From: Podarcis muralis
Taxonomy: Eukaryota
Direction: 5' to 3'
Assembly: GCF_964188315.1 (NCBI RefSeq)
Contig: NC_135656.1
Coordinates: forward strand, 44,144,001 to 44,208,000
DNA: 64,000 bases
Positions 41,401 to 44,400 of this stretch are shown here, piece by piece; the first letter of the stretch is position 1; the number at the start of each line of letters is the position of its first letter. The notes beneath the pieces are model-generated. The model searched no databases and had not been told where the DNA came from. It worked only from the letters and a program-made list of their open reading frames with translations. The translations under genes were made by a program, and so were the position numbers.

Positions 41401-44400
41401 AAATGCACTAAAATCAAGGTTACAAGGGGAAAAAAGTGGTGGGCATGACCAAAGTGAAAGCAGCACCAGAAGCTGGAAAGATTGAAATCCACAGATGCCT
41501 GGATAATTTCTATCCTGGGCACTTAAGAGATCAGTTTCACTGCATAAGAATAAACTATAACCCTATGCCACTCTTTGATCTGAAGTATAAGGGAATTTCT
41601 CTGGGTCAGACAGTACGAATATATGAACTATCACAGCAGAGCTCAAATTTCAAGTTCTTCATCACATCCAGAGAAAATCTGAAGGGTGTAGGAGAGACGA
41701 TGAATCTAAGAAGAGTAGATCTGTGGCTCAGAGATACTGTAGAATCTAGTCTGGTTCTAAGTTAGGAACAAGGCCTCAAGATGTGTATCAATTTTAAGGT
41801 ACTCTTTAATTTTTGCACATTATACCTGATCTAGATAGTCATAGCTTCTGTGTTTGGTTTTGCCCAACTCAAATGCTTAACCATAACGGACCAAGACTCT
41901 GTGTAAGCATCCTGGGAAACACTTCTACATTCAAACAGAAATGGCTATAGATTGCAAGGAACCATCAGAAAAGAAGTATATTCAGGCCCTTTGAGCTTAC
42001 ACTGTTTTGATAAACACACTTGTTCAAATGTGCATCAAGTGAAGTGATGCCATGAACGGGTTACCTGCAAGCAGCCTCCTGTACTCTCTTGTTGCTGTCA
42101 AGAATCCGCTTGAGCAGCTCTGTCATCAGAGGCTTGAGATACATGTCTGGGGGTTGGCTCACAACCCAGTGGGCATAACGGCTCAGGGTCCAGCAGGCAA
42201 TGGAGCGCACTAGGGCCTTCTTGTCAGAGAGACATTGGATCAAGTGGGGAATCAATTCAGGGAGGTAGGGAACCATGCCCTGCATGCAGCCTAGAAATAC
42301 AAGAAAATGCGTTCAGCATACTTTTTAGGCATATCAGAGGGCTGCCAAATTCTTGTTCACATGAAGTTGCTGCCAATGCCTTCCCCTTTTTGCAAATGCA
42401 AACCCCTAGTTTAAGTGATACAATTATAGAACTCACCTTCAGCGATGGCCCCTAGAACGAGGATTCCGGACTCCTTGATGACCCACTCGGGGTGGAAGAG
42501 TAGCCCCTTGAGCAGCGGGAGCAGGTGTGGGAGGAGCTCATCTCTGAAGACATTGGCCAAGACATCAAGGGCGGCAGCAGAGCATTTTCCTGTAGGAGAC
42601 ATGGGGCTATGTGGTAGAATCTGCACAGAGCACTAGTGGGAAAGCTCTGGCCCATGAGCCAAATTAGGCCCATAAGGTCTCCCAATTTGTGCCTTATTGT
42701 TCCTTTGCATTTCTGAACTTGTGCTGTTTATGTTTGGGGCCGAATATGAGCCTCACTGCTTTGGGGCACAATTGGCTCCACTCAGGAGCTCCCAGCTGGA
42801 TTTCATTCCTCCTTATGCCACAGATGGTCATAAGGCAGAGGCGATTGACAAATCTGGTGTGTGGAGCCTTGGCTGCTATTTGATCCCACTCTCCAGCATA
42901 AAGTGACTCCCTATGCATTGCACAGAGTAAACTCTGTGCGAACAAAGTGTCTTTTAGGGAAGAGACAAGCAGGAAAAAAGCACTCGCTTTAGTATAAACC
43001 TTGCAAGGCAGAAAGTATCTTTTAGGGGTAAGAAAACCCCAAGCTATGCAATTCTAGCAACTCTGTTAAACAAGAACTATCTTTTTAACAAGAAATAAAA
43101 TTGGACCATTGAATAAGCTCCTTCGGTGTGTATCTTCTTCCCACATAAAAGTCTAAAGAATCAGGCCAATGACCCATCTTGTCCAACATCCTGTTCCCAC
43201 AGTGGCCAACCAGATGCTTGAGGACAGTCTACAAGCAGGACATAAGCACAACACTTTGCCCACCTGCGATTCCCAGCAATTGGTATTCAGAGGCATTTGC
43301 CCCATACCATCACAAATGAAAAGGAATGGTATCAAGTCAGTTAAGTGCCCAGTGCTCCACTCTACTAGCTCCTGGCAGCCTCATAGTTGGCACTTTCCCA
43401 TCTCAAAAGCACTGCACAACTCTTCCCCTACTCACTCAGATTCCAGTCAGATAGCGTGTCATCGTCGTCATCCTCATCCTCTCCATCTTCATCATCCTGT
43501 AGCCGTTCCTCCTCATGCTGCAGGGTAACCGTGCGTGATTTGTGGAAACGAGGCTTGATATCCTGCTCACTGTCAGGGATGGCTTCATCCTCTTCCACAT
43601 CACCCTGAAATTGAGTAGGGGGAGCACATGCCAGGGAAATGAGCTCTTGCAAAACAGTACAATATTTCTTGTTCTTGGTGGGATAGTTACTTAATGCCAA
43701 AATAAACCCTGGCAAAGAATGGTAACCCTCCAGTCCTCTTGGGACTCTTCACATCATGCATCCATGGATCAGACAGGACGAATACAACAACCCATCACAG
43801 TTGTCAGGCTGAAGGTTATGCATCATTTCCAAGAATGCATGTGCTTGGCCACTGACTTGGGAGGGTGAAAGCATGTATGAATTTCACTTGAAAAGTTAGA
43901 CTGGCCCTGACTTATACTAAATGGGGCAAAACATAGTTAAACTCACCAGGGGGGCTTTGCAGCCAGGAAACTCAGAAAAAGTGTTTTAACTCAACTGATC
44001 AAGCCCATAACCCTAGTCTGTCATCTTAGGAAGAACTTTTCTTATAAAGACATGGTTATTCAGTCAGCATATAGGTGTAGCTCATGATGGAACTTGCAGG
44101 AGTTCCAGTGAAAGCCCCCAGCACCACAGACCCAGCTTCAGTAGAACAGAACTAGTACAGTGGTGCCTCGCAAGACGAAATTAATTCGTTCCGCAAGTTT
44201 TTTCTTCTTGCGAGTTTTTCGTCTTGCGAAGCACGGTTTCCCATAGGAATGCATTGAAAATCAATTAATGCGTTCCTAGGGAAACAGCTTGCCAGGCTGG
44301 CGGTGCGGAGAAGGGCTTTTCACCCCACCGCAAGCCTTCAGGACAGGTACGGGAACAGAGGGGAAGGCGCGCAGCGCTTTCCCTCTGTTCCCGGGGCTTG

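Follow-up and report, generated by a model that had tools for sequence, protein, structure and literature searches.

The window, a stretch of 64,000 nucleotides of DNA from Podarcis muralis that was analyzed as a whole, carries on its minus strand a series of open reading frames (ORFs) that are exons of the transportin-2 gene (TNPO2), the word-search matches to them including proteins named transportin-2. Two box C/D snoRNAs of the SNORD41 family lie in introns of this gene. The upstream element, hereafter copy 2, occupies positions 43755–43841 of the minus strand and is assigned from its sequence, its match to the Rfam SNORD41 model, and its orthologs. It shares with SNORD41 an intronic position in TNPO2, in the intron that separates the exon reading ...DIILLK from the exon encoding the acidic loop of transportin-2. 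This downstream host exon (GDVEEDE...DWNL; 43437–43604, minus strand) was identified from the ORF list and its transportin-2 matches; the 3' splice site AG of the intron is found at 43606–43605 (minus strand), 164 nt after box D of copy 2. The second element, copy 1, is a canonical SNORD41 at 41601–41671 (minus strand) that is likewise hosted by TNPO2, two introns further downstream and 196 nt from the next exon. The intron of copy 2 also contains, about 700 nt upstream of the snoRNA, a GC-rich 60-bp minisatellite (44515–45293; 13 copies, 92% match) that gives rise to long spurious ORFs on both strands.

Two other snoRNA-like sequences were seen in the window. A further box C/D-like element is located in a downstream TNPO2 intron (39728–39824, minus strand), where a GTGATGA motif, an internal CTGA that follows ...acattcgaatc, and a terminal CTGA are enclosed by cccagaa/ttctggg ends; no Rfam match was obtained for this element at E-values up to 0.5. 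Farther along, at 60926–61082 (minus strand), there is a weak SCARNA7-like match of 29.9 bits (gathering score 65; E-value 0.0034).

Copy 2 retains the complete layout of a box C/D snoRNA of the SNORD41 family, with an extended terminal stem. Read 5' to 3' on the minus strand, it opens with the 5' arm of a 14-bp terminal (external) stem (43828–43841), recognized by fold prediction and covariation, followed by the C box AUGAUGC (43820–43826), whose seventh position is C rather than A in both the sequence and the Rfam alignment. The D' box CUGA (43804–43807) is invariant in alignments A2 and A4, as is the UGAUG of the C' box GUGAUGG (43792–43798). The D-box guide UGUAUUCGUCCUG (43774–43786) comes next, separated by a spacer of a single U (43773) from the D box CUGA (43769–43772), which is supported by the sequence and the Rfam alignment and is likewise invariant in A2 and A4. 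The element closes with the 3' arm of the terminal stem (43755–43768), supported in the same way as the 5' arm. The arrangement expected of SNORD41, a box C (RUGAUGA) and a box D (CUGA) joined by a terminal stem, is thus present; the C at position 7 of the C box faces the U that precedes box D, and one pair of stem II is lost.

The Rfam SNORD41 model (RF00588) aligns with copy 2 end to end, model positions 1–70 covering 43764–43832, at 38.0 bits; the E-value is 1.3e-5 when 1 kb is scanned and 8.2e-4 when the search covers the entire window. The gathering score of the model is 41 bits, and a copy that scores below it would be missed by annotation pipelines. The first-pass annotation had called this element a SNORD41 paralog and judged it very likely unannotated; the end-to-end alignment and the orthologs in the same intron of other species bear out the identity, and a score of 38.0 bits, under the 41-bit annotation threshold, agrees with the second judgment. 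Copy 1, at 48.3 bits, is the only above-threshold SNORD41 match in the window. Orthologs of copy 2 at the same position score 48.1 bits (contigs L001 and L011), 42.5 bits (L009), and 33.5–39.8 bits (the others). A chance match of copy 2 to the model is ruled out by the orthologous elements found in the same intron of other species.

The two copies differ at the base of the guide that matters most for methylation. At the fifth base upstream of box D, copy 1 and the Rfam consensus have A and copy 2 has C, at position 43777 (g on the plus strand), where comparison of the sequences gives A as the ancestral state. Against the canonical complement CAGUACGAAUACA, a 28S target deduced from the conserved guide, the Rfam consensus, and the assignment to 28S-Um4276 (PMC1636440) rather than from the rDNA of this animal, the copy 2 guide forms 12 of 13 pairs, and the sole mismatch is at +5. 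The Watson–Crick A opposite the target U that characterizes a SNORD41 guide is therefore replaced by C in copy 2. The guide of copy 1, UAUUCGUACUG, has A at +5 and forms 11 contiguous pairs with the same 28S site. Rereading of the minus strand returned the same coordinates, boxes, 12-of-13 pairing, and position of the +5 mismatch that had been proposed at first pass, including a C box that ends in C (AUGAUGC, 43826–43820).

The +5 A-to-C substitution is real, shared, and established in this lizard lineage. A protein entry identical to the exon ORF of the window (P0349) led to three contigs (L016, L017, and L018) from three different runs, which differ from the window by 10 fixed differences and a 29-nt indel in about 900 nt (~1.1% divergence) and from one another at 2–4 sites. 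All three carry C at +5 and the same C box as the window, and the snoRNA shows one other difference, at 43788. An assembly error or a private variant is ruled out by the occurrence of the same C in these contigs; the substitution, for which sequencing error or a private variant had been named as the outcome that would dismiss it, thus withstood comparison with a lineage ~1.1% diverged, and it is older than the split of these two close lineages. At the same position, all nine more distant sauropsid sequences have A.

A word search with the acidic-loop exon and contig look-ups were combined and yielded 16 Logan contigs that contain this exon; their exon peptides, GC content, and intron sizes suggest the labels squamate, GC-rich sauropsid, mammal-like, and fish-like, which we use here. 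A SNORD41-like element is present in the same TNPO2 intron of 9–10 other sauropsid contigs (L001, L002, L004–L009, L011, and L019), and with the three close relatives, orthologs occupy the same intron position in L001, L002, L004–L009, L011, and L016–L019. The contigs labeled as GC-rich sauropsids have compact introns, and their elements lie 77–113 nt from the 3' splice site with a canonical C box, GUGAUGA or GGGAUGA. One of them, L009, contains both copy types in the same order, each 74–78 nt from the next exon; its copy-1 type (2450–2518) is found two introns downstream of the copy-2 type and 74 nt from its exon. The presence of both copies in order in L009 places the two-copy layout before the split between squamates and the group to which L009 belongs. 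Copy 2 is an old, positionally conserved second SNORD41 gene in TNPO2, common to other sauropsids; it did not arise recently by duplication of the 41.6-kb copy, and the first-pass suggestion of a decaying duplicate does not hold.

Several searches gave negative results. In L002, the 660 nt past the matching exon, which stop short of the intron end, contain no copy 1. The mammal-like contig L010, used for exon mapping and an Rfam scan only, has, in the region L010:771–1035, a matching intron of only ~90 nt in which the Rfam scan gave no snoRNA; its acidic-loop peptide differs from the human one. An Rfam scan of the fish- or amphibian-like contig L012 gave no SNORD41 match at either intron, and a screen by motif pattern only found no element in the other contigs of its group (L013–L015), whose introns are short too. 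At the protein level, a search of representatives with the exon at 41236–41409 gave chiefly fragments of ORFs, without a full-length squamate TNPO2 that could be used, and a second word search with the ORF at 41188–41466 found no close relative. P0350, an unrelated bacterial-type protein of 543 residues, falls in the 90% cluster of P0002 together with a 56-residue ORF from a lizard exon, apparently through an artefact of clustering.

Structural constraint on the squamate copy is evident from comparisons in which the surrounding introns have lost all similarity. When the window is compared by blastn with L001–L006, only the exons and an island of ~99 nt that corresponds to the snoRNA and its stem align, and the introns do not; the same is true of L001 against L019. 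Across seven squamate sequences, 93.9% of the cells of the 14-bp stem are paired, and four pairs differ at both partners; the observed score was not attained in any of 500 shuffles. Folding of single sequences predicts the stem as well. Where a snoRNA is poorly placed within its intron, an external stem can make up for it. In the squamate copies, the distance from box D to the splice site has lengthened to 164–691 nt and the stems measure 13–17 bp, and the 14-bp stem of copy 2 suits a position that, at 164 nt from the 3' splice site, is far from the usual distance. Within the element, the D-box guide is the most conserved block across species, invariant in 10 sequences except for A5C in the window and G7A in L001.

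The C-ending C box belongs to this conserved state. A box of the form xUGAUGC is common to the lineage of the window and L016–L018, to L001, to L019, and to L002, L004, L005, and L006; its presence in four deep squamate lineages marks it as an old and tolerated state. Recent decay of the box in this species is ruled out by the same C in four squamate lineages whose introns cannot be aligned. A second deviation, this one in the guide, is found in L001 (635–692) and L019 (633–690), in both of which the G at position 7 of the guide is replaced by A (GUAUUCAUACUG). Their boxes and 13-nt guide are identical, a T-A pair of the stem has become A-T by compensatory change, and the introns are unalignable. 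Judged from this pattern, the G7A mismatched guide appears to have been under long-term constraint in the L001/L019 clade, and a mismatched guide kept for so long leaves non-canonical roles open for the squamate copy.

We consider that the simplest account of these observations is a loss of methylation guiding in an old second copy that was tolerated through redundancy, with the RNA probably still made, and we regard this account as about evenly poised between being right and wrong. Copy 2 represents, in squamates, the ancient second gene of the SNORD41 family that precedes the acidic-loop exon. Its C, D', C', and D boxes and 14-bp external stem, all the elements of a box C/D snoRNP, are intact, and since these biogenesis signals are preserved, the RNA is probably still produced: it would be cut from the intron and assembled with the core proteins. 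In this lizard lineage, A has been replaced by C at the guide base that faces the 28S uridine destined for methylation. Twelve of the 13 guide positions can still pair, but a C opposite the target U would be expected to block methyl transfer, leaving methylation of the 28S uridine to the copy at 41.6 kb. Since the guide of that copy is intact, the loss of guide activity in copy 2 could be tolerated without a new role. In this lineage, copy 2 probably no longer guides 28S methylation, and copy 1 probably still can. The sequences establish the identity, orthology, and structural constraint of copy 2 and a genuine, shared substitution; from them we infer that copy 2 is expressed and has lost its methylation activity, and that this loss is neutral. 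Published work points the same way, in that guides with a mismatch at the modification site have been treated as non-methylating with pairing still allowed (PMC4644070), and single-base changes in guides can inactivate or switch snoRNA domains (PMC6984369). Against this account, the ~1.1% divergence accumulated since the substitution is too short to separate drift from selection; against a purely neutral view, the G7A guide is conserved in L001 and L019 together with the boxes and stem pairing.

Another possibility is that copy 2 has been selected as a binder that does not methylate, its snoRNP docking on the 28S site either to chaperone folding or to compete with copy 1 and reduce the methylation that copy 1 directs. 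Pairing at 12 of 13 positions is kept and is longer than the 11 pairs of copy 1, every biogenesis element of copy 2 is intact, the guide of the squamate copy is conserved even with a mismatch in L001 and L019, and archaeal guides mismatched at the nucleotide to be modified have been proposed to pair without methylating (PMC4644070). The substitution is, however, too recent to show selection, and the data can be explained without a competitor role; we regard such a binder as doubtful. The more general proposition that selection on the squamate copy 2 is independent of methylation, so that the +5 C would produce either a dedicated 28S binder (tuner or chaperone) or a guide for a new G target, we hold just as tentatively. 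A retargeted guide, in which the +5 C directs methylation of a G in an rRNA, snRNA, or other RNA that contains a sequence like CAGGACGAAUAC, seems very unlikely when taken by itself: a change of one base can give a conserved snoRNA a new antisense element (PMC6984369) and the boxes and stem of copy 2 are intact, yet no target of this kind is known and a perfect match of 12–13 nt arising by chance in a suitable RNA is improbable.

Copy 2 might still work as a guide for the 28S uridine, either with reduced efficiency despite the C-U mismatch or because the 28S of this lineage differs at that base. The persistence of G7A under constraint in L001 and L019 suggests that some mismatches are compatible with function, but box C/D guides must form a Watson–Crick pair with the nucleotide that they target (work cited in PMC4644070), and copy 1 keeps A at +5, implying that the 28S base is still U; we consider continued guiding unlikely. 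Alternatively, copy 2 might be a silent pseudogene from which no stable RNA is made because its C box is weakened and the splice site is far away. The C at position 7 of the C box costs one stem II pair, the 3' splice site is 164 nt away as opposed to 74–78 nt in L009 and L011, and the Rfam score is under the gathering score. Set against this, the same C box is kept in four deep squamate lineages within a clearly constrained island, and a long covarying stem is a known compensation for a poor intron position, so that we give silence of the copy very little weight.

Under the account that we prefer, the simplest view of copy 2 is a loss within a known family that redundancy made tolerable, and the element is of interest in several respects. 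It shows that a sub-threshold snoRNA match can be a conserved gene. It is a natural, fixed case, in a vertebrate, of a box C/D guide changed at precisely the base that specifies methylation, with an intact paralog 2 kb away. The pair formed by copy 1 and copy 2 offers a ready comparison by which to ask whether a mismatch at the target site abolishes methylation in vivo, and it also suits the question of whether altered guides compete with intact paralogs. Squamates provide natural variants for the same test, as the intact guide, G7A, and A5C all occur with the UGAUGC box.

The closest known system is SNORD41 itself (U41; RF00588), which is encoded in a TNPO2 intron and guides 28S-Um4276 (PMC1636440). 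Copy 2 has the same host gene, the same box layout, and, but for one base, the same D-box guide; it differs in its +5 C, its C box AUGAUGC, its score of 38.0 bits, and its location in an intron other than that of copy 1. A second U41 isoform in mammalian TNPO2, SNORD41B/ZL2, was predicted in 2006 and listed as complementary to the 28S-Um4276 site over 14 nt (PMC1636440) and was later detected as ZL2 (PMC4053766). Copy 2 resembles it as a second SNORD41 isoform in the same host gene directed at the same 28S site, a likeness that we do not put forward as orthology. By published coordinates, mammalian SNORD41B lies downstream of SNORD41, whereas copy 2 is upstream of copy 1. In the literature, a chicken U41 isoform was not found, and SNORD41 was not found in a study of Xenopus snoRNA paralogs (PMC6984369) or in a 2026 paper on snoRNA evolution. 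The Xenopus paralogs offer a parallel of another kind, since a one-base change in the conserved antisense element of one paralog alters or abolishes its activity there; those cases, mostly H/ACA, were tested experimentally (PMC6984369), whereas the loss of activity in copy 2 is a prediction. The archaeal C/D sRNA guides (PMC4644070) match copy 2 in their extended complementarity with a sole mismatch at +5, read there as pairing without methylation. Unlike those guides, which are mostly one arm of a double guide, copy 2 is a vertebrate intronic single D-guide with an intact paralog nearby.
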